Positions 391 to 33,800 of a DNA stretch of 64,000 nt are shown piece after piece. The notes under the pieces are model-generated. The model saw only the letters and a list, made by a program, of their open reading frames with translations. It was not told the DNA's origin and did not search any database. The DNA is from Schizochytrium sp. TIO01 (taxonomy: Eukaryota > Protista > Bigyra: Labyrinthulomycetes): positions 7,236,761 through 7,300,760 of the forward strand of contig SMSO01000031.1 of assembly GCA_004764695.1 (NCBI GenBank), read 5' to 3'. Position 1 is the first letter of the stretch, and every line of letters begins with the position of its first letter. The position numbers were made by a program, and so were the translations under genes.

Positions 391-2860
391 TGAAGAAGTT
401 GGATTCGAAGAAGATCGATCGTTGATCGCGCTAGACATCGTTGGGCAGATCCGCTTTTCGAAAACGCGCTCCCAAAGGCGTTGCGACATGTCCACTAATG
501 TGCAGGTACAATGATAAATAACTGACTGAGATGGGCGAGGGAAGAAGAATCGTTCTCGATCGATGGAGAGAGAGAGACATACATACCATGAAAGAAAGAA
601 GCTTCCAGCTCGCGCAGGGTTCTTGGGAGAATACCGGGGCGCGGAGGGTGCCGCCTCACGGCCAAAGGGGGTGACCAATCGCGAGTCAGTCAAGCACTCG
701 CTGCTGATCATACTCGAAGACGGGCGTGGACTCTCTTGATGATGTCCGCAATCTTTTCTGCAATCTGGCGCATCGGAACCCGTGCAAAGGTGCGACTATT
801 TTCGCAACTCTAGAGCTAGCTATGGCTGGCTAGTTGGTTGACTAGGAGGCCTCTCCTATGTGTTTTGGGTAGGGGAACGTAGGACCCCGTCGCACACCCT
901 CGTGTCGTTACAAAACTAAATTGCGCAGAATCGATGCACTTTCAAGATGATAGCGATCCCGAACTGCAAAACTGCAAGGAAAGAGTACTCCAAGTCCTGT
1001 TCATGCACATCGGCGTCCTTGATTGTGGGCACAGCCACATGCGTGGTTGCTTGGTTTATGCCCTCTATATTCTAGCGAGATCAGGGACAGCCTGTTTGAG
1101 AGTTGGAGATTCAACGATACCTTCTAGCGTGCCCGTAATCATTCCAAAGGACGCGGAGTCATTTGTCATTTCCCTCCCTAGAACTAACTACTCAGTAGGT
1201 ATCTAGACATTATGACCTCCTTCAAACGATCCTCCGTATGGGGTTCTGATCATGTAAGTTGATTTAGTTCAGGCCGTGATCTAAGTTCGTAAGATTTGCA
1301 CGGGCGAAATCCCGGCCCGCCGCGATCCCGATATCGATATCCCTAATCTTCTTGCAGTGAAGTTCCTGGCGTCGATAGTTTTCCACAAAGGTCATGAAAG
1401 CAAGCAGTTATTTTGACTTGGGCTTGTCGTGAACGAGTCCTAGTTTCGTGCTACAACCAGCCCTTCCATGAATTATACCTGAGCTCTCTTCAAGTAAGGC
1501 TCTGCTATCTTCAACGCTACGCTGGTCTCTTCTCCTTAACTGGGTGCACCTTAAGTTGCGTTCTCTTCAAGTTGCCCGTTCTTGCGCCCCGCTCTCCTCG
1601 CTTAGCGGGGCGGTAGTGCCTCTTAACAGCTGCGTTCTCTCGCCTCCTCCAAGTTCCTTCCCTCGCTGCTCTCCTCGCGCATCTTCACTCTTGTAAGTAG
1701 GAACGGCAAGGTGAATGGAATGGCTGGCTGCCTCCTCCGGGTTGGGGAAACTGGCCACGAGGTCGCCGAGAATTTCGTCAGAGGGTCTGTGAGTTCTGGA
1801 CGTCCTCACTGCTGAAGTTCTCCAGGTTGTTCTTGAGGTCGTTCTCTGCGTAGATGATTGAGTTGCCGCATTTACTACCGTCTCAGGTTTCCACTTCATT
1901 CCTTTTGTAATCGAGCCTCAGTGCTTTTTCCTTTTAGTTTCAACTTTATGATACAACTACATATGTATGTATGGAATACGAATTGCTAACTATGGCTAAT
2001 GAGTTTAATTTATTTTAATTTATTTATAATAATAAAAAGAGAGAGCTCTGCACGTGGTAGGAACTCGATCGAATTGCTCGTTGCACAAAGCCTGAGGTGG
2101 CCGCTCGTTCATTCTGCCCTACGGAGCTGAGTTGGTGGGTGAAGCTCTGAATAATTCCGCTGCTGAGGTTGGCGATGAGTTCCCCCTTGGAGTGGAAAGG
2201 TGGTCAATCGCTGTAGTGCATCAGAATCGCAGGTTTCTACAACTGCTTACTTCTGCTCTTCTACCGTTTCCTCGAGTGGTCCTACCTCCCACTTAGCTGC
2301 TGCTACCTACCTACCGCCTTTTCCTTCCAGCTTTTACTCCGGTGAGAGCTATTCACAAAAACAAGGAGCGCCGCGTAGATACAATTTTGGAGGCGCGAGA
2401 ACTGCAGAGAGTTGACAGTCATTGGGTTCCTCTCCGTCTCCTGAGGGTGGTGGTAGCTGAGGATATCGAGGTCGCAGTCGCAGTCGTTGTACACCGCCTC
2501 CGACCGGTAGACAGAGGTGCCTTGCTTGCTTGTTTGTTTCCTCTGCGGATGAAATAGCAGCACCATCATCAGCAACAGCAACAGCAACAGCAGCAGCAGC
2601 GGCAGACTCGGCGAGGCCCCGGCCTGCACGCAGGTGGTGGCGTTGTTGACGGCGATCGTCGCGAGCGGGCTCCAGACGCGTGAAGCGCCGAATGCATGGA
2701 TGAACGAACGAATTGAAGTGAGAGAGATGGAGGATGGAATCAACACCCTCGCGCTCGATTGACGAGTTCCGAACGCCAAATTCAAGGCCGAGCAACGGCA
2801 CGGCGGGAGCGAGGGAGCACTCGCATCTTGGCCCTCTTTGCCGTAAACTTGTCACAGCCG

Positions 2861-3073
2861 CCGCGTCTCCCTCTCCGCTTGTGTCTTGCTTGCTTGCTTG
2901 CTTGCGTCAAACGTTGGCTTGCTTGCTTGCTTGCGTCAAAGGCTCGTGCACGAGAACCGGGACCCAGCGAGAAGCCTCATGAGATGAGATTGCTCCAATC
3001 CTCCGCTAGCACGCACGCACGCACGCACGCACGCAAGGAAGCAAGCAAGACACAAGCGGAGAGGGAGACGCGG
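2861..3073. repeat. 35-bp perfect inverted repeat (arms 2861-2895 and 3039-3073)
   Basis: ccgcgtctccctctccgcttgtgtcttgcttgctt has its exact reverse complement at 3039-3073. Confidence 0.9.
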
Positions 3074-5926
3074 CCGGTGTACGAATCCGCAGCAGCCTCC
3101 AGCGCGAGTGTAATGTCTTCATTCCTCCTCCGTGCCCTTTCGTGGCGTGTGCAGAGCGAGCGATGTCTTCTTCGCCATTGAGCGACTCGTGGCAGATCCT
3201 CATGTGCCAAAACTTGGCATCGTCGCACACCTCTTCGCTGTAGCACCCGCTACGCGTAACGCTAAGGGCACCTCACTCCCCGCGTTCCCCGAAATATGCA
3301 TGCAATGCAGAGGACACGAGCCTTTGATGACCTTCCTCCAAGAGCGCTGGGACCGTTAGTCAGCGGGTAGATACTGTTACTGGAGCCCAAAGGAACTCGA
3401 TTCCATGTGCGATGATTCCATATGTGCGAGAGAGGATGAATGATCCTTTCTCGATCGCCGTCATCGTTGGAAAGCGACTGACTGCCTGACAGACTGACTC
3501 ACTTGGCTCGACCAGAGTTGGATTTACTTTCGCGATGGAGAGGACGATGTGCAGTTGGGCTTGATTTGAGGTTGAAGCTCGAGGGCCGCCATGGAACTGG
3601 ATGCCTGCTCTTGTTGGTGGTGGTTCTTACCTTCAGGCAGGCCGGAGTTTAAGAGAGAAGCGTCCTTTATGTTGAGAGAGTCTGGAGGCTCAAGGATATC
3701 ATGAAACAGTTCGAATGTTTGAGTGAACATTCGGAGCGATCACAGAATTGCTTTATTTTTATTTTTATTTTTATTTTTTATTTCTAAAAGAAAATATTAT
3801 AATGTTTTAAAAACTAAAATTAAAACCATGTTTCTAGCTCATTTATTTACCATAATAGCACCTTATATATCAAATTAAAATAGAAATTGTTGCTCAGAAC
3901 TCAGGCCAGTTCTGACAGCATAGACCCACCTAATCTGCCAGAACTACTACTCATGCGCGCACGTAAAGCGTTTCGAATTGAACACTACATACAATACTTC
4001 TAAATCGGCAATTAAAAACACCAAAATCAAGAGGAAAAAAACGGAGAGCTAAGAAAGAATCGAATGGACCCGAGAGACCCCAAAGAACAACCGCCAAAGA
4101 ACAACCGCCAAAGACAAAGACTTAGAGAGAGAGAGAGATGGAAAAAGCATTCCCAGCCAAAGAAACCTTCGCAGTAGGTGAGCAGGTACCACGTAAGCGT
4201 ATCCAAAGCGAGATGGCCTCAGGAGTGCGTGTGTGTGTGTGTCTGTGTGCCTGTGCTTTCTTTCTTCACACGCTCGACTCACGCACTCACTGACTCGAGA
4301 GCTGCTCGTGCTCCAGAAAAACAAACTGAGCGGAACGTGGTGCGCATTCTTTTCTTTCTTCGTATCATCTTCATCTGTCTTTCCTCCCTATCTGAGCTAC
4401 GGCCGGACGGTTGGCCGTCCACTCAGTCACTAAGTCAGTCAGTCACTAAGTCAGTCAGTTAGTCAGTCAATAAGCTCTCTTGAACGAGAACATCAACTTC
4501 AACTTGCTTGAAAACTGCAGTCAGTTGTTCTCAATGTGCATCTATGTATGTATGCATTTATGTATGTATTGTATGTATTGTATGTGTCTGTGTGTGTGTG
4601 TGGAAATGCAGCGGAAATTGAGGGAACCGTGAGAACGGGGCATTGAATGAATGAATGAATATATTGAAGCACCTCGGAACGAGCGATTCCGCGGATAATC
4701 TTGCTCACGGACTTTTTCTCTCACAACATTTCGTGTGATTTATTCACACGAAAAGCAAGCATTCAAGCTTTTATCACTTCGAAAGAAAAGGCGCAGGCCG
4801 TACTGGCGGGCTAGCCAGCCCTACGGGCCTAGCTACCATCGTAGTTTCTGCCATGCAAAAGAGGGAGAACAGTTCTGCTGTTCTGTTCTGCTGAGTGCGT
4901 GCGTGCTTACCCGCCTACGGTGACGTCGTAGTAGGTAGTATGCAGCAGTAGTATCTATCTACCTGGAGGGATCTAGTATCTAGGTACGTGTTACGTATGT
5001 GTATATGTACCTTTCGTTGTAAGCGGGTATCCAGCTAGTGTCAGCGTAGCGAGTGCTACCGTGGAGCGATGTGTCTTTAGCTGGCCTCGTAAAACACGGG
5101 CCAGTCTATCTGTCTCGTGAGGAAAGTAAGTAAGTACCTAAGTTAGGAAGTGGGCCGGCAAGTTTGGGCTCAGGCTGAAGCAGAAGAGGCAGCAGCAGCG
5201 GAGCAATCAGTGGCAATCTTCGAGGATCGCTGCGCATTCGTACGCAGAAACCGATCGATCGGTTCGTCTTCAGAGGAGTTCTACGAAATCCTGCGCCGTT
5301 CTTCGCATGCCTACAACACATCGATAGATAGATACATATTCATGGGCGAGAGGTCCTAGGCGTATCCATAGAGGCACCCTACAATAGCGCGGCAGTACCG
5401 AATTGCGTAGAAAGTGGATATTTGGAAGCTCCAAAAGCAATTCACGACTCGACTTAGTCAGCACAAAAGAAGAAAGAGCGACGAACTTGAACTCGACAGA
5501 ATGAGGGAGAAACAGAGAAAGAAACAGAGAAAGAAAGAAAGAAAGAAAGAAAAGAGAAAATGCTCTGCTCTGCTCTGCTCTTCTCCTCTGAGGGAGGAGA
5601 GGGAAAAAGGGAGTCGAGCTGAGGCAGACTCGTACGTACGCTCTTGCGAGGGAGGGAGAGCTCAAGTTCGCTCAGGAGCTTTGTGACAGCTCGAGGAAAC
5701 TTACTTCTTGCTTGCTTACTTACTTAGTTTGAAGACCAATCCAACATGCATCACCAAACCAAAGAAAGAGGAGTGAGTGAGCATAGTGCAAGAAGAGGAA
5801 GAAGAGCAGGAAAAAGCCCCGCCGATCGAGAGATGTCAATCAGTGGCAGCGTGTACGGGACCGCGTGTACCGCCCGCTCAGTTGGGAGGAGAGAGAGAAA
5901 AGAGGCGAATCGTCGGCTCAAAGATG

Positions 5927-6008
5927 AGTTTGTTTGTTTGTTTGTTTGTTTGTTTGTTTGTTTGTTTGTTTGTTTGTTTGTTTGTTTGTTTGTTTGTTTG
6001 TTTGTTTG
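5927..6008. repeat. (TTTG)n microsatellite
   Basis: About 20 perfect tetramer copies. Confidence 0.97.
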
Positions 6009-9000
6009 AATTATTTGTTTATTTTGAAGTAAATAAATAAATAAATGGATAAATAATAGTGAAATGAAGAGACAACGAAAACTGAAGAGGATGACGACGC
6101 TGTTGAAGAAGAAGAAGAAGGAGTGGCACATGATTCTTTGGACTCCTCGACGGAATGGCTGGCTGCCTGGCTGCCTGGCGGGAGCAGCGGAAGAGAGGGG
6201 AAAAGGCTGCAGCAAAATAGCTGAGGTAGGCTTAAAGCTGAGCCGAAGCTGGCTACTGCGATGCAGACGCACCTCGCTCAGTGGTATTTCGCAAGTTCTG
6301 CGGAAAATAATAAAGTACAATACGAATTACATTGCCCTCTCTCCTTCTCGGCTACCTGCGCTTTAGTATATGTTTTGCTTTGTTTGTGTTTTAATTAAGT
6401 TAAGAGGAGATCGATCTTTTTCCTGCTGCTCTCTCTTTCAGTATTGATTAGCTACGAGAGAGTTTGTTTTTCATTCAATTATAATTTTTTAAAAAGAAAA
6501 AGAAAAAGAACGCAGCGCATTGTTTTAGGGAAAAGGAGGGGGAAAACTTAACAGAAAGAGGTTTAAAAGAAATATAGCGAGTTCGCGCTCTCACTAAATA
6601 TAGCGAGTTCATGCGTGCGATTCTTCTCAGCAGGCCATTTATAGCGAGTTCGCGCGCATACTGATCCGCCCATTTCAAAAGAACGAAAGCAGAAAAGAAA
6701 GCAAAGAGGTCGAGAAGGGGCAGGGAGGGGGCAGTCTCCACGCCCACAAACATACCTACAGAGAAACAAAGAAACCAAGAAACAAAGCAAAATCCATCCA
6801 TCCCACCAACAATCCAGACAACAGACACGAGCGGTAGATAGTCCTTATTAGAAAAGAACAACCAAGAAAGAAACAAAGAAAGAAAGAAAGAAAGAAAGAA
6901 AGAAAAAAAGAAAGAAAAGAAAAAAGCGCTCGAAAAGAGGCCGCCTGCCTTCTTCCTGAACCTACTTCAGTGAGGTGGTGAGTAAATGAATAAATAAAAC
7001 AACAAAACAAACAAACAAAACAAACAAACAAAAAATGCATCTCCGCATGGATAAATGTGTTCCTGGAGCCTAGAAGCCAAGGCTTACGCGCTGCTTTCGG
7101 AGGCCCACGACTCTTGGGTGGACCAACCACTGCGCTTAACAATGCCGTCATTCGGCTTCGATGATGCGCAACTAACGACGTCGCAGGCTCCGTGAAGGCG
7201 GCTCAGTCTCCAGGCTTTCTTTCGCAGAGCGCCCGACTTCCTCCGCTTTCTTGCGGAGCCCCCGAACATCGCTTTTCACCCCCGCAGATTCGTCGTCTCG
7301 CTTTCCCTCAAAGCTACGAGCAAAGCTGTAGCTTTCAAGACCCCACAGCGCCTCTCTGCCGTCGCCGTCTGGCGTAGTGCTTCCTGCCTTTGGCTTGCCT
7401 AGCTACTTACTGTTCCTGAGACCACTTATTTCGCTCTTTCTCGCTTTCTAGTTCTTGAGAACAAGTAATTGAATAATTGAATGAATAAAGAGCTAAATAA
7501 AGTTGTTGAAATAAAGTAATCAATAGGCGAAGAATTATCCCCCTGTGACGCACGAAGACCCAAGAAAGCATCGGGAGACGTGCACGTCGCTCCACTGCCT
7601 CCTCTTCAAACCACGCTTAAGCAGCGGTTTCTTCGCCAGCTCCGCCTCAGACCGTGGCTGGCAATCGGTTGAGGGGGCTAGTGAGTTGGCCACATATCCT
7701 GCGTAGAGAAAAAGGCTCGCTGTAAATAATTTCAAGTTTAAGTTTTTCGTTTAAATTCGTTTCAATTGACTAGGACCCAGTAGACAGCACTACCCAACTC
7801 CAGCCAGCTAGCAGGGATTGACTTAGGTATTAAAGGCACGCAGCGTTCTGCGAAGTTCTTGATGAAAGAACGCGACGATGCGCCTCTGGGACATTGACAA
7901 CACGTCTCCTTTCGCGGTTCAGGCCTCAGTGGGACAGGAAGCGGGTTTCCTCTTAGCTGTTGGCTTTGTCTCGGGGTCTCTAATAATGAATAAAAAGAAG
8001 ATGAAAAAGAAGAAGAAGAAGAAGATGGTTTATGTTATGTTATTGCTTTCGTGCAATTTAAGCTGCCGGAGCTCGAATAAAATATTCTTAAAAGAAATAG
8101 CAACGGGAAAATGCTAAGAGAGAGAGAGAAAGTAGTTCACCGTTGGTTTATTTACGTTGCTCTTTTTGTTTTAATATATTTTAGTAATGATATTAATGAA
8201 TTAAGCATGGGCGAAACTAAAAATTCTTTTAAAAAGAAACTAAGACAGGGTACATAATATGTAATCGCAGATGCTACTGAGCAAAAATTATAAAATTCTT
8301 TTGTTTCAAAATGAACTCCGAGGTCTTGAATTGAAATACCTCAAACCAGGTCCGTTATAGCATTCCAAGTGCGAGAGATCTTTACCAACTAGAGCTGTAA
8401 AGGTCGGTCCTGTCCAGAAGGTGTCCTGTACGCGGATGTGCTCGCCTTCTCCCGCATAGGGCCGTTGGCTTGTGCAGTTGTTTGCCTGATAATTCATTCA
8501 TCCAAATATATAACTGTTTCTATTATTTTGGTTTTTTATTTCTTTACTTTTACCATATAAATATATTTATTTGTTTGTTTATTTGTTTGCCAAGTGGCGT
8601 AGGATGCACTTACCGACAATAGAGGGTTTTCTGGGTGGTTGGCTGTTTATTCTATTCATTGCAAAGACTTAGCGCAGCGTAGTGCTAATGTTGGCTCTAC
8701 AGAGGTCCTACCGGGCATCGCCTTCCAGGTTGGTTTCAAAACCTGCGAAGAGGCGAGCGATCGAAGAGAAAGTTAAAAGTTATTTTCTCTTCTGCCAGCG
8801 AAAGAAGCTGGTAAGCACTCTTAAGTCTATTGCTTATGGCTTCAAGAAACTAATCTCCTTTTTCCTTTTCCTTTCTTTTCTTTTTCATTACCTTATTAAG
8901 TTGAATAATGGATGATCAAATCGAAGTAGACTCGTAAAACAGATGTCCAGGCGCCTCCAGCACCCGCGTAGAAATCCCTTTCGGAGAGATCGTCTGCAGA

Positions 9001-11913
9001 TTATGGACAGAAACATCGCTGGAGGACCTATATTCGTCCACGCACGTATTGAATTGATCTGATCATCGAGAGAGATCTCCCTGGAATTCGTCCATACTAA
9101 CGTCCTTTTGAGTCATCATGATTTGCTCGAATTTCTTTCTCCTGTTGGGTGTACATAGACCTCGGCCTAAGGCGCGTCTTCTTGGCGGCGGGGTATAAGC
9201 CCCAACTTATTTAAAACAGTAGGGGCGGTCGCCCAGTGGAGCTGTGAGGGGATGTAGCGGGATGAGTCGGATCACCGCGAGACTAAAGAAACGAAGAAGC
9301 GCACTTCGAGAGCAGAAACTGTGGCTTTTGCTTTGAACTGGAGAGCCTTTCGCTGTTTAAGCCGAGCTTAAGTCGCGGCAGTACGTCAGTTTACGCGCGA
9401 AGAGAGGGATATAAGCGGTAGCCTGACGACGCGATAAGCTCAAGAGGGAACGACGGCCGGCATCCTGCAAACAAACAAATATATATATATATATATAAAT
9501 TAAAATTTTAATTAATTAAATTTTTAATGGAGATGTACCATCAATTTAAACAGGAAATAAGTGAACGAATAGTTGAAGAATTGAAGAAATAAATGGTTGC
9601 GGGCTCTTACTATGCTACGAGTCGAGGGAAAGCGGCTTAGAATGATTGATTAGTTGATGGATAAATTGATTGATGGATCGATCCATTAGACGAAAGCCTC
9701 ATTTATCTTTATATGTGATTAGCAGGCAAAACTTTGTCAGGACGAGAGCTGTGTTGCCTTGTGTAGTACCCCAAAAATATAGAAATCTTGTACACTATTT
9801 ATAATACATACTCTCTCTCATACTAAACAATTTTCGTTCAATGAGAATTAGAGTAACGCTTGCAATTGCCAAATGAGGAGAAAATCCGCCTACTGTTCTG
9901 TATAGCGGGGCCCTAAAGCGGCCCACCTCGCATTACATTCTTGACGGAGATTTGATGAATAATCGCAGAGAATGACAGTCATGACATGAATTAGTCACGC
10001 ATGAAATGAAAAGGAAACGCGTTGCAATGGACTGCGAATCCTAAAAGACGCTGCGGTCCAAATGTCAGAGAATCCAAATGAATGTCAACTGCGACGGAGC
10101 TTTGGCAATAATCCAAAAGTCGCAGATCTAATTGCGCCGCGTCTTGAAATCAAAAAGACCCTTAAGTTTAATAAGAAGGAGGTGCATCGTAATCCGACTG
10201 ACTGGCTCGAGACGAGACAGACTCAAGAATGGATCATGTCGTTGAAATTCTTCACCTCGAGAAAAGGGTCGCCAGGAGCAATCGCTTATTCAGAGGAGAA
10301 GGGAAAGAGCCCGAGATTAGAGATTATGAATTGAAGCTGCCAGCAGCGCTTTGCTTTGGTGAGAAAGGCGACTTAATCTGTCTGCGAAGCACCGATCTTA
10401 GAGCGATTTGAGAGGAATTGCGTATTCCTAAATCTCCCCTCTGACCAAATTTTTGGATCTGCGTACTTTATAGAAAAAGATAACTTTTTTTAATCTTAAA
10501 TTAAATAGTTCTCTCAACCATTTTTTTTTTTTAATTTATAAAAATAATCATAAGAAAAGACAGAAATGTACATTTCAAAACATGCGGACAAATGGCTTTG
10601 AATGTAAACATAGAATTAGCAGCACAATCGAAAGTATTCACTGGTACAGTAGTACGTAGAAGCCAGGAAAAGGGCCAGGAATTGTATCATTCTGAGAGAA
10701 CAGGAGATCGACCTTTTGCTGCGCCTCAGTGATTTCAAGTGAACTGGAGTAGGGCCTCTTCTGCAAAATGCAAACGGAGTGAGAAAACAACCAAAAGGAA
10801 TGAATATGCGGGAATGGATAATTAAGTCAATTGCTTGTAGAAGGGGGGAGCAAACAATACATGAAAACTTTACAAACAAGTTGCCAAAAGGTATTTTGTT
10901 TTGTTTTGTTTTCTTCTCTTCTCGTGAAAACTCTTCGTCTGTTGAACACCATGTTATTAGAGAATTTCCTTGCGTCGAAGAGCTCTTTAATTCATTCATT
11001 CATTCATTCATTCATTGCCGGATTGACCAATTTATTATATTTCTGGGCGGATTTTGTTTCGTCGCCACAGTGTTTGTTAGTGCGTATCTTAAGCGCTGAT
11101 TGCTTTGGGAAGTTACTTAGAGAGTGAAAGAAAGAAACAGAGAAAGAAACAAAGTCATCAGCCAAAAAGATAACAGGAGAACGAAAGCAACAGACGCTGG
11201 AGCTTGCTTGCTTACTTGCATCGTAGTCGCTTTGATAAAACCAGAAGCGAGAGAACGATGGCCTTTTCAATGGCTTTTTCAAATAGCGATTCATCTAGAA
11301 AGACTAGGGTACCAGTTTGTTTTCAATGTTAAAACAATGAGGGACCTGCAGATTATTTTATACAATAAAAACTTATTGGTACTTTTTAAAATTAAAAACA
11401 TTTTTAAAATATATATTTAAATAGTAGGGATAAAATAAAAATAAACAGCACGAGAGAAGAAGTTAAAAACGGGAGAGGGAGAGGAAGAAAGTGAGGAGAT
11501 GGAAAAGCGAAGAAGTAACAAGATGCCACTGCTAACGCTTCCTATTGAAAATTGGTACCAATAGGGGCTTGTGGAAGGGTCTTACGGGACACGGGGTGCC
11601 TCGTTCAAAGTGGGAGGGAGGGCCTCTAGGGAGACTGGTAGCGTATGTCGTAGGAGATGCATGGTTCGAGGAGGAAAAGAAGAGCGACGATGACGAGGGC
11701 GTCGAAGCGGAGGTGACCAAAAACCTGTCAGCAAACCCCAAACTCGAGATCAAAGCAAGATTCTTCGGAGCCACTTCAAAGGCATCGAATATTGCGCTTT
11801 GACCTTCGAAACACTCAAACAAACAAACAAACGAATAAGAACAACAACAGGCAAAGCTTGTTGTCAACAACAGAACCAAGTCACACAAGCAAAAGTCATC
11901 AATCAACGTCAAG

Positions 11914-17245: not shown

Positions 17246-18134
17246 CTAGTTGAGGTCGAGATCTATTTCATTAGGAATCTCAAGCAGAAAGGCATCAAAA
17301 TTATTCTCGACATAGTCACAGAAGTAACGGAAGTCCTTGCATGAATCAATTAAGATTTTTAGGACCTGAACTGACTTTTGAAGAGGACTTGCCAGACTTT
17401 CGCCACGTAAAAAGCCTGATTTAACCTCTTCGATTTGGATTTTTCCTTTATGGTACCACCAACCTGAGGCTTGTCCTGAAGACTTGCTCACCATCGTTCT
17501 GAGCAATAATTTCAGAAACTAGGTTTCTTTGCTCAACAGGGTCTTTGATATATTTGAAAGTTTTGTACACTTCTGATGTGGTGTCGAGAACGCCAGCTTC
17601 TTCTATAATGCTTAATAATTGATTATCCTCAGGATACTCTCCAACAAAATCTTTCCATTCCATCAAGTAGGCAAGGGTTGGAGTAGAATCAGGGGCAACT
17701 CGAATGTCAATTCTCCAATTTTCACCAATGTAAGAAAACCACATCGCCAATTGAATAAGACCAATCACATTCTCATTTGATTCAATAAGGTGACCTACTG
17801 AACGTGAGAAGATATTGGAATCCGTCAGATCGAGTGCATCTTCCGAACCAATAGACTGAAGATGATTCAAGTAGTTGGCAACAGTTTGCGAATTGGCAGG
17901 AACACCACCATTATAGTCTATATTCGAGTCGAGCGCTTTTTCAATCTTGAGAAAAACATCCTGCTGCTCATTCCGCTGAGTCATGATCTTCGCGCCAAGA
18001 GTTTCTGTAAATGAGCGCTGGGATGTGTCAGTTTCCGTGCCAGAGATGCATGTCGCTGCCAGGAAAACCTGAGCCACAACCGCCACCACTGTGAGCTTGC
18101 GAGGCAGCTTCATCTTTTCTTGTCGAGTCGCCAC
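17246..18134 (-). CDS. Uncharacterised secreted/membrane family protein, paralogue 1, split by a +1 frameshift near 17461
   Basis: Hydrophobic N-terminus (LTVVAVVAQVFLAATC). The block LIQLAMWFSYIGENWRIDI matches the paralogues at 29772-30890 and 51800-53269. Removing one base at 17461-17462 joins ORF 17448..18134 to 17246..17506 (RTSLR-WWYHKGK...LKILIDSCKDF...FLL...IDLD) and restores the family C-terminus. Confidence 0.8.
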
Positions 18135-18789
18135 TGCTGCTGACTGTCTTCGTTGGTGTATGTATCGCCTGCCACAGCCAACTGCGCAGTGACAAGGAAC
18201 TGCTTCGAGCTACCTGGCTAGCTAGTCGCTCTCCCGGTTCTTTGCTATTGCTGTCGTTCGAAGTTGTCGTTTGGGGTCTGCCTGCGTCCACAGCCAGCTG
18301 GGATCGCCTCTTCGTCCCTGCCTCGCGCGTTTGCCGCACGATGCGGCTCTGGCTTCCGCGCCAGGATCAATTATAGTTTTGCCTGCTCTGCTTTTTGTTT
18401 GGACCCTTGCGCGCGGAGGTACGCGTGTGTTACTTTTTCTTTTTCTATTTCTTTTTCTTTTTCTTTTCTTTCAATTACTTTTTTTAAATTACACCCAGCT
18501 CTCTCCATTCATAAAGTTGGAAAGTAGGTATTACACCCTCTGCTAGTACTCGCCTACCTCTTCGCTGAGGACCCCGTCTGCAAAGCGCATCAGCTTTTCT
18601 TCTTTTTCTCTTCACTTTTCCGAAGAAAAACACTTTTTCTCTCTCTCTTCCTTTCTTTCCCCCTAAACAAACAAGCACACAATCATCCTCGCAGCCCTCC
18701 TTTCCAACCCCGCCCATTCGCTCTTCATTCTTCGCGAGGCCATCGCAAGCGCCAAACTCGCAGAGCTGCCGAAACAAGCAGTGTCCAAG

Positions 18790-19088
18790 CACAAGAACAA
18801 TAACAATAACAACAATAACAGGAACAAATAACAACAACGAATAACAATAACAATAACAACAAGAACAGGAACAAATAACAACAACGGATAACAATAACAA
18901 TAACAATAACAATGGCAACAATCGAATAATAATAATAAGAACAAATAACAAGAACAAGAATAAGAACAAGAACAAGAACAAGAACAAGAACAAGAACAAG
19001 AACAAGAACAAGAACAAGAACAAGAACAAGAACAAGAACAAGAACAAGAACAAGAACAAGAACAAGAACAAGAACAAGAACAAGAACA
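18790..19088. repeat. Compound (AACAAT)n/(AACAAG)n microsatellite
   Basis: Degenerate AACAAT run followed by more than 20 AACAAG hexamers. Confidence 0.97.
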
Positions 19089-19375
19089 AAACCCGCGCAA
19101 TGCCACGGTCTGCCTACAAGTACGTGGGCCTCTGCGCCGCTCCGTGAACACGAGGACCCGAAGCGCTGCCACAGACTGCCGCCGCAGTGCCTATTGGGCG
19201 ACCTGCGAAGAGCGCTAAGCGCGGTTCTCGCATCAGATTTGGAGACCTGCACACATTATTCTTGACAGGGAAGTGCATTCGAAGGACCACAGCTGCACGC
19301 TATGGATGTATACGCAAAGGTAACCAACCATAACATGTACACGCGGCGAAATGCACGAAAGGAAACGGGGTTCGA

Positions 19376-23674: not shown

Positions 23675-26600
23675 TTATTCTAGTCTCGCAGAAGCTTGCT
23701 CAAATATGCGTATTGATGGGAACCTTCTTCTTGCTTCAGAAACAGACTCTCGTGCACCCAACTTGATGAGAATCTCAAGTCCTTTGCGATTCCATGAGAA
23801 ATTATAAATTGCCCGACACGCCCATTCTTGCACGTCTGCATTCGTTCGATGTGAGCGCATGGCGGCAACAATCTCTTCACCCACATTCAAATCTTGTCCC
23901 AGGATCTCTCGGTTGCGATCGTTCAAAGCAAGGTTCGACAATGCTGTACATGCGTATCTTTGCACGTCTGCATTCGTTCGATGTGCTCCCATGGCGGCCA
24001 CAATCTCTTCACCCACATTCAAATCTTGTCCCAGGATCTCTCGGTTGCGATCATTTTTAATTGCAAGATTCGACAGTGCTCTACATGCACTACTTTGCAC
24101 GTCTGCATTCGTTCGATGTGCGCATGCGGCCACAATCTCTTCACCCACATTCAAATCTTGTCCCAGGATCTCTACGTTGCGATCATTTTTCACGACAAGA
24201 TTATACAGTGCTCCATGCGTATCTTTGCACTTCTGCATTCGTTCGATGTGCGCATGGCGGCCACAATCTCTCACCCACATTCAAATCTTGTCCCAGGATC
24301 TCTGCGTTACGATCATTTGAAGCAAGATTACACAGTACTCCACATGCATACCTTTGCACGTCTGCATTCGTTCGATGTGCGCGCATGACGGCCACAATCT
24401 CTTCACCCACATTCAAATCTTGTCCCAGGATCTCTGCGTTGCGATCATTGCTTGAACCAAGATTCATCAATGCCCGACATGCATATTCTTGCACGTCTGC
24501 ATTCGTTCGATGTGTACACATGGCGGCCACAATCTCTGCACCCACATTCAAATCTTGGCCCAAAATCTCTCGGTTACGATCATTTTTCACGACAAGATTA
24601 CACAGTGCTCCACATGCGTCTCTTTGCACTTCTGCATTCGTTCGATGTGCGCGCATGGCGGCCACAATCTCTTCACCCACATTCAAATCTTGTCCCAGGA
24701 TCTCTACGTTGCGATCATTTTTCACGACAAGATTATACAGTGCTCCGCATGCGTATCTTTGCACTTCTGCATTCGTTCGATGTGCGCGCATGGCGGCCAC
24801 AATCTCTGCACCCACATTCAAATCTTGTCCCAGGATCTCTGCGTTGCGATCATTTGACAGCAAGATTCCACAGTGCTCCACATGCACTACGTTTGCACTT
24901 CTGCATTCGTTCGATGTGCGCGCATGGCGGCCACAATCTCTTCACCCACATTCAAATCTTGTCCCAGGATCTCTTCGTTGCGATCATTTTCACGACAAGA
25001 TTCCACAGTGCTCCGCATGCGTATCTTTGCACTTCTGCATTCGTTCGATGTGCGCGCATGGCGGCCACAATCTCTGCACCCACATTCAAATCTTGTCCCA
25101 GGATCTCTGCGTTGCGATCATTTGAAGCAAGATTCCACAGTGCTCCACATGCATATCGTTTGCACTTCTGCATTCGTTCGATGTGCGCGCATGGCGGCCA
25201 CAATCTCTGCGCCCACATTCAAATCTTGTCCCAGGATCTCTTTGTTGCGACCATTTTGAAGCAAGATTCCGCAGTGCTCCACATGCATATCTTTGCACTT
25301 CTGCATTCGTTCGATGTGCGCGCATGGCGGCCACAATCTCTTCACCCACATTCAAATCTTGTCCCAGGATCTCTTTGTTGCGACCATTTGAAGCAAGATT
25401 CCGCAGTGCTCCACATGCATATCTTTGCACTTCTGCATTCGTTCGATGTGCGCGCATGGCGGCCACAATCTCTTCACCCACATTCAAATCTTGTCCCAGG
25501 ATCTCTGTGTTGCGATCATTTACAGCAAGATTCCACAGTGCTCCACATGCATATTTTTGCACGTCTGCATTCGTTCGATATGCGCGCATGGCGGCCACAA
25601 TCTCTTCACCCACATTCAAATCTTGCGCTAGAGTAACTTCATTCTCTTTATTACTGAAGGTAAGAGTCCTGACACAAGCACATGCTGCGGCCTGCACTGC
25701 TGCTTCGCTCGCATACTCTTGCATAATACGAATCAGTACAGGGCCTATACCATAGGTTTTCACTGCCGCCTCAGTATACTCCACAGCAGCCTCACCAGAA
25801 AAAGCAAAACGAAATGTCCAAAGCGCTTCAGAAATCACTTCGGCATCGTGTTGTTCATCCTTCAGGATTTTTATCAAATGAACAAGGATACCCCGCTCAC
25901 GAACCTCTCTTCTCAGCTGATCGTGGCCCTCTTCAGCTTCAGCTGACTCGAATTCGCCCTCCAAAATGTCGTGCAGAATCTGTAGCGTTCGTAAAAAATC
26001 AACTCGCTCGCCTCTCTCAGCCAAATCTCGAACGAGGCCTTGCACCATTTCCACACTCACACTCTGCTTTGCAGATGTGCGATGGTTCCGTTTTGAGAAG
26101 GCAGCAGCAAGTCCACGTATAAGTCTGCTCGATCGACGTTCAACACCGCGAGACTCGAACCTTTTTAAGACCTCCTCAGCAGTAGGCCTCTTCGCGGGCT
26201 CTTCGTCCCAACAAGACTCCATGATGCGGACGACCCAGAGTTTTACCGGGATCTCATCAGATATTACAGGGCGCTCCCCTGCAAGAACTCTGCTTTCAAG
26301 CTCTCCTGGGTGATAAATCAAATGCTCGTATGGCGTCTCCTCATGATAAATCTCCCACACAACCACACCTAGAGAATATGTATCTGCCTTTGTTGTCCAG
26401 CGAGCAGGCGCCTGAAGTACTTCTGGAGCCATATACACGGGGGTTCCAGCCACAGAAATTGTCTCCGCCAAACTTGTATTTGGACTCGTTCTGGCAGCAA
26501 GACCAAAGTCTGCTAGCTTCACTAGACCAAAATCTTGACTGAGAAGTACATTGGCGGGTTTCAGATCACGATGAATCACATTCTGACTATGGAGATAGCA

Positions 26601-27596
26601 GAGTCCTCGTGAAATGCCACGTAAAATGGCCTCTTTATCATCTAAACCAAGTGTAGCGAATGTGCCACTCGGTTTGACCTCATATAGAAGCTCATCTAGG
26701 GACAAGTCACATTTATCCATGACCAAATGGAACCGGTTTTGAATGATGCACGTCCCAAGAAGGCAGACGATATTTTTATGATGCAATCCCTGCCAACTTT
26801 GGGCTTCTTCAAGCAATGCCTTCTGTTCAGCAAGTTGAAGCCGCCCGCGAATCTGGCGTACTCGCTTAATTGCAACTGGCGTATTTGTACTGTCTTCACC
26901 ATGGAGAACACCTGAAACGACTTGTCCAAAGCTGCCTTCACCAAGAATGTGCTCTGGATAATCTATGGTGACTTTTTCACGTGATATTGTCGCCATCTCC
27001 GATTCTTGCGTTTCTCGCAGTGCACGAGTTAAATCTTGAAGCGCTCGTCTTTGTCTGCCCGTTCCAGCACGACCTTCTATAATATCTGTAAGGCTGATAT
27101 CAGGCTGGGCTTTAAGCAATGACAATATGGCTTCAATGTGGTCGTGGCCTTGATCTTGATATTGTTTGATCATATGTTCGAGGCAGATGTGATCTTCTTC
27201 AGCATCGTCGAGGTCCATTTGCTCGACGGATGCAGGCGGTAATGGGATCTCAAAGCGGATTCGGCAGACCTGGATCAATGTTTGCAAGCGTTGCTCCACA
27301 TCTGAGAGCACTTGAGCAGCTCGTTTCGTGTCCATAAGTTGTAGAATCACGGTGGAGTCGCTATGGTTGGGATCAAAGAACTCACGAAGTAGCGCGATGA
27401 TGTTGCGTAGAGTGGCTTCAACCTGGATAAAGTTGATGTCAGCTTGGTGCAAGGGCTCCAGAAAACTGGCGAGCTTGCTAAAGACATTGTTGAGGTGTGC
27501 AGCTCTTCGATGGCATGTATTAGTATGCTCAAGAAGTGTCGCACCCTCGCGAATTAGCTGAAGCGATGATGTGAAGCTTGGCGGGATGCTTGGCAT
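23675..27596 (-). CDS. MLKL-NTD/HeLo-like four-helix domain + TKL-type protein kinase + 14 highly conserved armadillo repeats (frameshifted within the repeat array)
   Basis: Kinase motifs are intact: GEGSFG, VAIK, HRDLKPAN, DFG, GTPVYMAPE, DTYSLG, CW..P..RP. ARM unit LGQDLNVGEEIVAAMRAHRTNAEVQxxACxALxNL continues through ORFs 25086..27701, 24952..25218, 24201..24887 and 23675..24280 to a capping repeat and stop at 23675. ATG at 27596 is preferred; 27689 is possible. Confidence 0.9.
23790..25625 (-). repeat. Coding tandem repeat array, 14 units of about 132/135 bp (ARM)
   Basis: Anchor ccacattcaaatctt occurs at about 23881, 24013, 24145, 24275, 24407, 24542, 24677, 24812, 24946, 25080, 25213, 25346, 25478 and 25610. 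Confidence 0.97.
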
Positions 27597-29771: not shown

Positions 29772-30890
29772 TCATCCTTCGACTTCCATGGGCGTTGCGA
29801 CAAGGTAGCCGTAAAATACGGCTCGTAAAACATCATTGAAACGGGGATAGCTGTTGCACGCATCCGAAAGAATCGCGAGCGCTTCACTATAGCTCTTCAA
29901 TGCCAAAATCGTATGTTTATCGTCGTGTCCTCGAAGTCGTGGAGAAACTTGGTTTTTAATAGGTATTGCGTTCCATACTCTTTGGTATGCGTCCATTGAA
30001 TCATGTCCTTGCTCAATAGCAAGAGTTAAGGCTAGTAAATGGTACCATTCGTCTAAAGTCTGCCCTGTGCTAAGGGCTTGTTCGAAACGGTCAACAAAAA
30101 ACTTTCCTTGGATTTCCTGAGTTGTAATTAGGGATTTTATTCTCTTTTCAATTTGTTGGAGTTTTAGCGTCTTTAAAGCTTCGTCAATTCCTGCCTCACT
30201 CGTGGGCCTGACATATGATGCTGGCCTGGTGATGTTAGGAATCTTAACTTTCATATCCTTCATAAGAATAACAGTGCGAGCTTGGTCATCTTTTCTGACC
30301 TCGATATCATCGAGATGCTCCTCGAATTGGAATTGGGTGTGACCATTCCAACTTTCTTCAGAGTCCAGGGCTAGCATCCATTCTAAGGATTGTTTTGCAT
30401 TCTCCGTAAGCTTAACATCCCGTGGCCATGCTCGAGCAATTTCTTCAAACCAATATGACATTTGAATGAGTGAGTTCAGACCTGCATGGCTAGCAAGAAG
30501 GGCTCGTATCGCAAGGGTTACAACGTTGAGTTCTTCAGGGTCTACATTTACAGTATCCATTTCAGAGTCGGTGTTCAAAATCAAAGTCCCGTCGGTATGT
30601 TCATGCAGAGCTAGCCATAGGTTATTTTGACGTTGTTGGGTATCATCGCCTTCAAATCCATGGTTCAAGTCATCCCCGTCAGCAACAGTAAGTACGGCGA
30701 CCTCGAAAGCTTTGCGATTCTCTTTCTGGTTCTTGGCGTCGCTTGAACTCATGTGCATGTTTTCTTCGTATAGGTTGATAATAGATTTCCTTGTCTGAAA
30801 GCCTTGCACAAGAGACTCACACGCAACAAGGTTAAACGTGATAATCATCATTAATGACCACATTCTGCTAAGCGTCTTCGACATTATCAT
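29772..30890 (-). CDS. Uncharacterised secreted/membrane family protein, paralogue 2
   Basis: Open 372-aa ORF from ATG 30890 with a hydrophobic N-terminus. Shares HTDG(T/S)LIL, LNVxTLxI, WFxxIAxAWPxDV and YPRxNDxLRAVFY with the 51800 protein. Confidence 0.85.
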   Translation of the reverse strand: MIMSKTLSRMWSLMMIITFNLVACESLVQGFQTRKSIINLYEENMHMSSSDAKNQKENRKAFEVAVLTVADGDDLNHGFEGDDTQQRQNNLWLALHEHTDGTLILNTDSEMDTVNVDPEELNVVTLAIRALLASHAGLNSLIQMSYWFEEIARAWPRDVKLTENAKQSLEWMLALDSEESWNGHTQFQFEEHLDDIEVRKDDQARTVILMKDMKVKIPNITRPASYVRPTSEAGIDEALKTLKLQQIEKRIKSLITTQEIQGKFFVDRFEQALSTGQTLDEWYHLLALTLAIEQGHDSMDAYQRVWNAIPIKNQVSPRLRGHDDKHTILALKSYSEALAILSDACNSYPRFNDVLRAVFYGYLVATPMEVEG

Positions 30891-33800
30891 TTTAGTTGGG
30901 AGTCTGCCACGGAGATGAGGGATGATCAAACAAAGACAGCGTAGATGCCTTCAGGTATCTACACCGCACTTAAATAACGACTGAGGGCTTTTGAGAGCCT
31001 GGTTTGCCAGCCAGTAGATTTGATGAGACTGTTTCTTTTTTAATCTCTTCCACACCACCTGCGTAGGAAAGACTGAGCCCTTGTTTTCTGTTGGTTTTTT
31101 CACCCCAATCTCTGCAAATGGCACACAAGTGCAAGATATTAATTAAACTCTTCTATAGCGGCGTGGTCTTTTTTACATTTAAGAATCGTGTGGTTTTGGC
31201 CAGTGCTGTATCTGTTGTATCTGTTTGCGCTTTGAATTCCAGGTTTGCTGACCAATATTCGTCTTTGTTGTGTTTGGGTCTCATTGTAGAGGTAGTAGTA
31301 GTCCATAAACCAGGCTATGCCTAATCCTAAGTACACTTTAGTTTAAAAGGTTTAATCGGCATCACGGTAGTAATAAAATAAAAACATTTACTTGGGATTG
31401 CATAACTACTAGTAGTCAGAGTGATTGCTGAGTTCTCTTGTATTTGACTCGTACACGGTGCTCCATAGTAGAGATGACAAGAGAAGAGGTTACTATCGTT
31501 GCAGTACTGCTGGATACTTGGTTTTCATAAGGTAGATTTATTGTATCTAGATTCAAAAGTATTCGAAATTTTCTCATTTCTTTTGAGATTAATGATGATT
31601 TAAAAAAAAAAATGCTTTTTAAATTTTAAAATGCGGGAATATATTTTTCTTCTATATTTTTCAGTAGTGAGCAGCCCTAGTTTGGTTGCCCACCAATATT
31701 TCCCCATTCATAATTATGCAACTTGAACAGCAGACACGAATCTATCCTGACTCCTTATCTGATTTCACACATCGAAGAGGCTATCACTCTACGACTTCAT
31801 GGTATAGACCAAACCAACCCCGAGTTCCGTACCTATTATAGTTTTAAGGAACGTCTATTAACTTTTTAATAAAGAAAGGAAGCATAACCTACAACTTTTT
31901 TATCTTCTATTTTTCATTTTTTTGTGTTTTCTAATGCTTCTATGCTTTCCACTTTCTCGTTGTTCTGAAAATAAAAAATGTGGTGAACTTTCATGTTCCA
32001 AGGAGGTGAGTAAGCAGTTTGGTCGCCAGGGTGAAGCTTTTCTCGCTTGTTCACCAACCAGACAGAAGTCTATATATATATATATATATATTTATCAGTA
32101 TATAAAACAAAGACCAAAAGAACCGAATCAGGCTTTGGTTTTTGCTTATATAATTGACTTTTTATTTTATTTTAAATAAATATATGTTATTTGTATTGTA
32201 AAATGATTTTCTCTCGTTAAAAAGCAACTTCAAGACAGAAGACAGGCTTAAGGCTCATATATCTCGATGATCAGCTCCAATATCTTTCTTATATGTTTCA
32301 TTGGATTTCTCCATTAATATTATATATATGATTCGGCGGGTCTGTTAAGTTAATAAAGTATTATCAGACCATCATCCTTATTCGAACGACTATATCATCA
32401 TTATGGTGCAGGGCAGATACAGTCCACAAATTCAACCCTCATGAAACCTACTTGTGTCGGAACGTTCAAAAGTCTCCTATTCTTCTAAATAATAAATTAT
32501 TTTCTTTTCATTAATTAATTTAAATTAAAACAAGACGCACACAAATGATTTGAAAAATTATGTTCATGGTCCGTCTCAAGCGAGAATCTTACGCCATCGC
32601 TTCAAAGCACCTTCTTGAACATGTGATTTGAAGCTTGAAGATACATCTTGGTCGAGAGCTGTTCACGCTTCAACTGGACTTCTAAATACTGCGTCAAAAT
32701 TATTAACTGAAACCTACATAATTCATCCAATTCGAATTTGATACTACACTTTATCAATATTATTTTCGTCAACCTACATTTTAAAATAGCTACATAGAGA
32801 TTTTTTATTCTCTACAGAGTTGTAGTGAAGCTTTAAGTTGGAGTGATTTTAAGTGATGAGACTAAAATATGCCCCATATTCTAATATCACTACACATTGA
32901 CAGCACTCAAGCGTGAAGCTGTTGTAATGCTTGTGAAACATGAACCGCGTTGTCTTGGATGCTTAAACCGTATGATCTCTGTCCCGAGGCTTTGCAAAAC
33001 TGGCAGACACATACTCTTTACTTTGTTTTCTTTGTAAATGACAAAACTTACATTAAACATTAGAGAAAACGAACCCAACAATATCTTGTAACAATAAATA
33101 AATAAAAATCATTTGTTGAAATCTATTGATGCCACAACCCCTTTTTAAATAAAAGTAAATTTTTTTTTTGTCAAGGCACCTTATCGGTTAGTGACTTAAT
33201 TTAATAATAAATAAAAATGAATGTGTCGCATCTGCTAACTTGGTAAAGAAGGCTCAAGTCAAAGCACATCACTCTTATCTCTTTGTCATCTTTTTACGCT
33301 TGGATTAGGTACGCCCTCTATGTATTTCGAGCAAGAACTTAGTGTGGTCAGCTAAACTAAAGCAGATATCACGAAACCTTGAGACAGATACTATTGTGCT
33401 ATATCTGCAAACGCCAGATGCTGACAATCACATATCATTACACTCCGTTCCTGCGGGTCTACTTTTATTCGCCAATGTGCCATGAGCTCGTGGAGGCCTG
33501 TCATGACAAAGTGCGATCGAGTGGCTGAGATGTCTATTATTACCATGAACTGATATTCATGCATGAATGACTGAAGAACAAAGGTGCAAAGCAGCAACAT
33601 CAAGATGAATGAAGCTCAAAGTTCCTTTTCTCTTCTTTTCTTTTCAAATAAAGAAAAGTAGCGAAGCAAAATAATCAATCCTATGCTTGCAGCTCGGTAA
33701 CTTGAACGAACGGTCTGTTTGCAAGGCGTATGATATATCTTCGCAAGGCGATGACTTGTTCTGTTCTTCCTCCATTGTGGAAGACTTCGACGGAGTAGAA

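Follow-up and report, generated by a model that had tools for sequence, protein, structure and literature searches.

A thraustochytrid gene family joining a putative MLKL-type helical bundle to a RIPK1-like kinase and an Armadillo repeat array, viewed from a damaged locus of Schizochytrium sp. TIO01

A 64,000-nucleotide stretch of the genome of the labyrinthulomycete Schizochytrium sp. TIO01 (assembly GCA_004764695.1, contig SMSO01000031.1, positions 7,236,761 to 7,300,760 of the forward strand; here called the window, to which all positions refer unless stated otherwise) carries on its minus strand, between 27596 and 23675, a gene that combines a predicted N-terminal four-helix bundle resembling the executioner domain of MLKL, a protein kinase domain and a tandem array of Armadillo (ARM) repeats. 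The likely start codon is the ATG at 27596, because every paralogue begins at the equivalent MPS...; the program-called open reading frame (ORF) opens at a GTG 35 codons upstream. From this ATG the frame stays open to 25086, yielding 836 amino acids. The bundle (27267..27581; residues 6-110) is followed by brace-like helices linking it to the kinase (26994..27227; residues 124-201), by the kinase domain itself with every catalytic motif (26163..26951; residues 216-478), and by a family-specific helical linker with degenerate pre-array repeats (25626..26162; residues 479-657) that is conserved at about 22 loci of the genome and in all paralogues. The array proper comprises 14 ARM units of 44-45 amino acids (23828..25625) and is succeeded by a last divergent unit, a conserved C-terminal cap and the stop codon (23675..23827). 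The cap, recognizable by the motif LGA-E...RFP, is kept ahead of the stop in intact paralogues; the motif recurs at loci L013, L014, L015, L018-L021 and L023 and in proteins of Hondaea. An earlier sequence-only reading of this DNA had described a helical N-terminus, a complete kinase that retains VAIK, HRD and DFG as MLKL does not, and a 14-unit ARM array, all in one gene. The three parts are confirmed here by structure prediction, Pfam and repeat analysis, respectively. As a single ORF the gene does not stand, since the frame ends at 25086 and that reading had passed silently over eight insertions and deletions.

The N-terminus was modelled with AlphaFold2 (AF2) on an alignment of 12 paralogous N-termini, which also served as a search profile (A1). 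The model (predicted local distance difference test score, pLDDT, 85.8; predicted template modelling score, pTM, 0.79) forms the bundle from helices at residues 6-23, 29-49, 56-74 and 80-110 and places further helices at 124-147, 154-163, 169-173 and 180-201. A search of the complete PDB sequence set with A1 gave five constructs of the human MLKL N-terminal domain as its best matches (E 0.007-0.015), followed by an unrelated entry (E 0.061). This alignment pairs profile positions 6-139 with MLKL 5-151, thereby covering the bundle and the first brace helix. Within it, the invariant cysteine of the family and the basic residues that follow it where helix 2 begins fall on the C-K-K-Q-C-R-R of MLKL, and an acidic D-A-E-E-D at the start of the first brace helix falls on the D-A-D-E-D of the MLKL brace; among the 12 paralogues Asp131 is invariant and Asp135 nearly so. 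Identity to MLKL over the aligned residues is only about 13-21%. A by-eye alignment to human MLKL in the sequence-only reading agrees with HMMER in its first block (the cysteine and two basic residues of helix 2) and in the start of its third; its second block is displaced by about 7 residues, and its third requires a 7-residue gap.

Comparisons of the predicted structure lead to the same protein. Structure prediction followed by Foldseek, the check proposed along with the suggestion that the N-terminus is MLKL-like, returned the four-helix bundle model and, as the top five PDB matches, MLKL executioner-domain entries (probability 0.91-0.99, E 0.07-0.5). The top seven matches by VIA-align are likewise all MLKL (Z 9.0-11.2; best root-mean-square deviation 3.2 over 125 residues). 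A Foldseek-independent search of 48,161 representative chains again placed MLKL first (Z 10.3, 127 residues aligned), and mouse MLKL, the coiled-coil (CC) domain of potato Rx, the CC-R domain of NRG1 and AtMLKL3 were also listed. Among named clusters of the ESM Atlas the nearest are MLKL_N (top score 0.89, mostly oomycete), followed by MCAfunc, RPW8 and HeLo. Finally, MLKL_N is the Pfam family matched by the largest number of the paralogous N-termini, albeit weakly (3 of 12, best E 0.011); the Pfam scan of the N-terminus of the window gene alone returned no family match, only noise at E 0.16-0.23. Thus profile search, fold search and language-model neighbours agree on an MLKL-like N-terminus, each below threshold.

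The model shows the up-down four-helix bundle and subsequent brace helices that characterize the MLKL_N fold, with a small margin over designed bundles, and these elements lie N-terminally and directly upstream of a kinase fold (bundle 6-110, brace 124-201, kinase 216-478). The N-terminus is thus probably a remote homologue of the MLKL executioner, or at the least shares its fold and its architectural position. Because all matches to MLKL lie under curated thresholds, including the 27 bits set for MLKL_N (PF22215), they point to remote homology rather than demonstrating membership of MLKL_N.

The kinase domain is readily recognized by Pfam (Pkinase, 2.6e-48; PK_Tyr_Ser-Thr, 6e-48), and the window copy keeps the glycine loop, the VAIK lysine, HRD, DFG and APE; it does not share the dead pseudokinase of MLKL proper. 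Its closest solved single kinase domain is that of human RIPK1 (5.4e-32 with the single sequence; 9e-45 and 156 bits with the family profile), ahead of FGFR3 (141 bits) and TAK1 (136 bits) in the profile search, a lead of 15 bits. A 678-residue EGFR entry scores equal to or higher than RIPK1, but none of its matched segments is by itself within the E-value limit. Pfam found no RHIM, death or CARD domain in the gene at E <= 1, and no RHIM-like motif was found in the linker by eye or by Pfam. As a separate observation, two positions within the kinase domain differ from the window (26610 T>C and 26612 A>T) in all four short-read runs compared with it, which reflects either a strain difference or an error in the assembly consensus.

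Catalytic motifs vary considerably across the family. HRD and DFG are both kept in 3 of 12 aligned paralogues (the window copy, L013 and L019), and the remainder carry HGD, HCD, HSD, HSN or HGN, and/or GFG, NFG or NFS, so that degenerate motifs occur in L014-L018 and L020-L023. Comparable changes are found in the relatives from Hondaea. On these motifs about half of the paralogues are predicted to be pseudokinases. Several paralogues show the non-RD motifs HGD, HCD and HSD (alignment A2), and non-RD kinases of plants and animals are associated with pattern-recognition signalling. The family is therefore a mix of predicted active kinases, non-RD kinases and pseudokinases, a pattern that fits a switch role.

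Tandem Repeats Finder reports the ARM region as a single array with a period of 132, 13.5 copies and 90% matches, and cutting it at the conserved D-L-N-V-G anchor yields 14 units of 130-135 bp. In Pfam the array matches Arm (1.8e-15, four stretches) and ARM_LRRK2 (up to 3.6e-16), as expected of Armadillo repeats (PF00514), tandem three-helix repeats of about 42 residues. Two plus-strand ORFs antisense to the array (24061-25125 and 24452-25636; 354 and 394 amino acids) have periodic translations and were rejected as by-products of the repeat.

Alignment of each broken ARM unit to an intact one located the frame breaks in two blocks; database searches used the pieces of the array separately. In the first (24858..25257, minus strand) there are single-base insertions at 25257, at 25158, near 24887, where an in-frame TAG is left, and at 24858, together with a single-base deletion near 24990. 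The second (24123..24271, minus strand) contains a single-base deletion near 24271 and two-base deletions near 24253 and 24214; in addition, one codon is lost in frame near 24123-24126. These eight frame-breaking indels lie in 5 of the 14 units, leaving 9 with a clean reading; the 2-kb unique part of the gene has none. When the units are read each in its own frame, two in-frame stops are found. Unless the indels are assembly errors, the locus encodes at most a truncated 836-residue bundle-kinase protein, or is a young pseudogene.

There is a considerable chance, somewhat below even, that these frameshifts are errors of assembly or polishing in a near-identical repeat and that the true gene is a single ORF of about 1,270 amino acids like its paralogues. 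All eight are confined to the 1.8-kb array and spare the 2-kb unique part, which by our estimate would happen about 2 times in 1,000 if they were spread evenly along the gene; they occupy short homopolymer or dinucleotide runs, and the C-terminal cap and its stop are intact despite them. We compared four runs over the locus, all of them short-read contigs that break within the array. Contigs without the extra base can be placed at 3 of the 4 sites of insertion, but these could derive from other units or from paralogues. In runs X1 and X3, two independent short-read assemblies, the bin that holds the three deletions of the second block (24156-24294) has about 1.3 to 1.5 times the coverage seen over the unique part of the gene, and no insertions are reported in it, which hints that these deletions are real. 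Moreover, the arrays of L013 and L014, although equally repetitive, are unbroken in the same assembly, and other family loci are broken too, some of them in the unique N-terminus.

A decaying pseudogene with no consequential product would account for the eight frame-breaking indels, the two in-frame stops and the fragmentary state of several further family loci, but is unlikely given that the 2.5-kb ORF spanning the bundle, the kinase and the first units is unbroken with every catalytic motif kept and near-identical across runs from 14 studies, that short family members of 795 and 907 amino acids occur naturally, and that coverage in two presumed RNA runs ends about 40 nucleotides upstream of the ATG whereas DNA runs extend further. 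More precisely, the unique part is near-identical and free of indels in the short-read assemblies of these 14 studies, and two runs predicted by software to be RNA contain it, one as a single 1,834-nucleotide contig. Upstream of the gene, coverage ends at about 27635 in X13, 40 nucleotides from the ATG, and has ceased by about 27630 in X16; two DNA-type runs go past this point.

To describe variation among the repeats, 34 clean ARM units from the window gene and its two closest paralogues were aligned. Entropy reaches at least 1 bit at 8 of the 45 unit positions (21, 24, 25, 28, 31, 35, 36 and 41), and 21 of the 45 are invariant. Pfam aligns positions 25-40 of the Arm profile with unit positions 19-34, and in this register positions 24, 28, 31 and 35 lie on one face of helix 3, where most of the variability is predicted to be displayed. 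We take position 28 to correspond to the tryptophan that contacts the ligand in repeats of the importin-alpha type. At variable codons the nonsynonymous component (pN) is 0.44 versus 0.036 elsewhere, and the ratio of nonsynonymous to synonymous variation (pN/pS) is 1.07-1.58 versus 0.30-0.84. Identity between units is 90-92.5% inside one gene and 85-90% across genes, and between the unique parts of paralogues it is 80-84%; units more alike than the unique parts are the pattern expected from repeat turnover or homogenization. The array thus has the character of highly internally conserved repeat sensors, in which near-identical repeats differ at few surface positions, and the parallel that the sequence-only reading had drawn to the repeats of fungal NLRs is upheld in this respect. 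Its description of the sensor as diversifying goes further than the data: since the sites were picked for being variable, the ratios are consistent with diversifying selection and do not demonstrate it.

A genome-wide count of paralogues, suggested together with the initial description of the locus, places it in a sizeable family. The 215-residue N-terminus has 27 matches across the 64-Mb genome, and the family-specific linker is found at 22 loci, which form clusters on contig C30 and include copies on C31, C33, C34, C24 and C13. Intact members range from 795 to 3024 amino acids with about 3 to 53 ARM units and share the same domain order and cap. These intact paralogues establish that the architecture is real; further family loci are fragments or frameshifted, and the window locus is itself a damaged member and not the best representative.

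Several members merit individual mention. One exception to the shared cap is L022 (C24:4429500-4439490), where an ORF on the minus strand (817-9891) encodes the 3024-residue member, whose kinase has HSD and NFG motifs and whose ARM units number about 53. At L016 (C34:4355500-4361500) a 1305-residue ORF stops within the array and has no cap; a 500-residue ARM ORF lies next to it in another frame, indicating a frame break inside this array too. Five family copies (L002-L004, L010, L011 and L013-L015) are clustered at C30:178-243 kb. Copies near 179 kb and 184 kb have identical scores and share a frame change in the N-terminal domain, which suggests that a segment containing a copy already broken was duplicated recently.

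Outside this genome the family appears to be confined to thraustochytrids. With the N-terminal profile as query, a full HMMER search of 1.84 billion protein representatives recovered only 12 clusters, and these offered no bridge to the MLKL families; the named relatives all come from Hondaea fermentalgiana, a thraustochytrid, and are labelled 'Protein kinase, putative'. One of the 12 clusters (P0127) proved to be a spurious match to an unrelated repeat protein, and a fungal match (P0008) is a multi-kinase protein that is not a relative of the N-terminus. A family member from Hondaea fermentalgiana (P0003, 1042 amino acids), annotated as a mitochondrial dicarboxylate/tricarboxylate carrier, has three Mito_carr repeats directly behind two ARM units and is probably a merged gene model. 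A search for stand-alone relatives of the bundle, in which the family profile was run against 5.8 billion proteins of 118-376 amino acids, gave nothing at E <= 10. Pfam scans of the gene and its relatives revealed no NTPase domain, and hence neither the NACHT nor the NB-ARC domain of NLR/STAND receptors.

Elsewhere in the window, a 278-residue plus-strand ORF at 15150-15986 matches eukaryotic-type carbonic anhydrase (Pfam, 1.1e-35), and the ORFs at 17448-18134, 18484-19089 and 29772-30929 have no Pfam match.

Taking these observations together, we lean towards the view that the locus is one of about 22 in a gene family restricted to thraustochytrids, whose members join an MLKL-type bundle, a brace, a RIPK1-like kinase and an ARM array with its cap, and that would operate as a one-chain, necroptosis-like switch. 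By analogy with MLKL, the plant MLKLs and the repeat-bearing NLRs, we infer the following mechanism. The groove of the ARM array would bind a ligand or guard a partner, and binding would shift the state of the kinase, through autophosphorylation or, in the pseudokinase members, through a conformational switch. The bundle, freed from the brace and kinase, might then oligomerize and attack a membrane, giving a necroptosis-like defence or self/non-self switch contained within one chain. A role in cell death, immunity or allorecognition is purely our inference.

Several findings weigh against this interpretation. The A1 score against MLKL is 18.9 bits, under the Pfam MLKL_N cut-off of 27 bits, even if its E-value of 0.007 is significant for a PDB search. 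A scan of the genome with PF22215 gave nothing at E <= 1, although the controls were silent too, so that this result says no more than that any match is below cut-off, and Pfam scans of nine full-length relatives gave no MLKL_N match at E <= 0.5. Bundles of four helices are widespread, and de novo designed examples reach Z 9.0 in comparison with 10.3 for MLKL. The joint model of bundle and kinase is weak (pTM 0.55, with a poor C-lobe) and was excluded from docking or fold claims, and the MLKL pseudokinase is absent from the 60 best kinase matches. In the window copy the array is out of frame, its eight small indels beginning after about 3.5 units. The pN/pS ratios of at most 1.58 come from sites chosen for their variability. 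Lastly, what the two presumed RNA runs say about transcription of the locus amounts to a hint and not to proof.

Many of these points would suit the chief competing reading, an ordinary signalling kinase in which the bundle is a regulatory or dimerization module devoid of membrane activity, the array is a substrate scaffold and the variable positions are simply unconstrained surface in a recently expanded, homogenized repeat. The sub-threshold likeness to MLKL, the scores of generic helical bundles almost as high, and a pN/pS near 1 are all compatible with such a protein, and ARM-plus-kinase proteins with non-death roles are known, the array itself matching the ARM profile of LRRK2. We nevertheless consider it doubtful. 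Four independent methods select MLKL or its superfamily over other bundles, and the likeness extends through the brace, in the same place ahead of the kinase. That paralogues have repeatedly lost catalytic residues suits a switch more than an enzyme, and the copy number and repeat dynamics of the family recall those of immune-receptor families.

If the family does act as a one-chain switch, a broader proposal follows that we regard as speculative and rather improbable: thraustochytrids might possess single-chain innate receptors that are not NLRs, each with a hypervariable ARM array that senses a ligand of viral or non-self origin, a switch formed by a RIPK-like kinase or by a pseudokinase derived from it, and an MLKL-type bundle that kills the cell. 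Were this true, a sensor, a RIPK-like activator and an MLKL-like executioner would be united in one polypeptide, and necroptosis-like machinery would exist in stramenopiles.

The sequence-only reading knew of no description of the architecture in such a protist. Proteins combining a four-helix bundle with a kinase are in fact known from animals, plants (10.1101/681015) and some fungi (PMC12881547), so that the basic fusion is not new; that part of the claim which concerns thraustochytrids holds, as our literature search found no paper tying MLKL to a thraustochytrid genus or describing a C-terminal ARM array on a bundle-kinase protein. Known MLKL-type fusions of bundle and kinase serve in regulated cell death or immunity. 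With a stramenopile family, their range would grow to include a kinase that is both RIPK1-like and catalytically competent and, on the same chain, a repeat sensor that varies rapidly. Such a family would bear on the question of whether necroptosis-like modules have an ancient origin or have been put together several times, and would provide a compact and genetically tractable model for how a sensor and a kinase switch are coupled to a bundle that attacks membranes. Thraustochytrids can be cultured and transformed.

Of the systems to which the window protein can be compared, vertebrate MLKL (human 2MSV, 6UX8 and 6ZVO; mouse 4BTF) is the best match of its N-terminus by both profile and structure, and the two can be aligned at the cysteine and basic residues of helix 2 and at the acidic motif of the brace. 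Vertebrate MLKL, however, is a pseudokinase that lacks C-terminal repeats and depends for its activation on another protein, the kinase RIPK3, whereas the window protein keeps VAIK, HRD and DFG in a kinase that is RIPK1-like rather than MLKL-like and that is followed by the 14-unit ARM array. RIPK1 supplies the closest solved kinase domain; its RHIM and death domain have no counterpart detected by Pfam in the window gene.

The plant MLKLs (AtMLKL1-3, 6KA4; wheat Pm13) consist of a HeLo/four-helix bundle, a multi-helix brace, a kinase fold and a C-terminal extension and have a role in immunity (10.1101/681015; PMC10951266). They share this layout with the window protein, AtMLKL3 being a structural match at Z 6.7, but the AtMLKLs are, according to the paper describing them, pseudokinases whose serine-rich C-terminal region has no known domain, and they have no repeat array. 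Fungal HeLo-like (HELL) proteins fuse a bundle of the same superfamily to a kinase or pseudokinase (PMC12881547). They belong to another eukaryotic supergroup, and HeLo ranks low among the ESM Atlas neighbours of the window N-terminus; we found no description in the literature of a C-terminal ARM array on a fungal HELL-kinase protein. LRRK2 resembles the window protein in pairing ARM repeats with a tyrosine-kinase-like (TKL) kinase, and its ARM profile matches the array, yet in LRRK2 the ARM repeats come before the kinase, and the protein also contains ROC-COR.

Finally, fungal NLRs of the HET-E and HET-D type, which carry WD40, ANK or TPR repeats, have in common with the window family the order of effector, switch and repeats, the near-identity of the repeats at the DNA level, the small number of variable surface positions and the organization as a multi-copy family with broken members. 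The window protein differs from them in bearing a kinase in the place of the switch instead of a NACHT or NB-ARC NTPase, and in that its repeats are ARM repeats.

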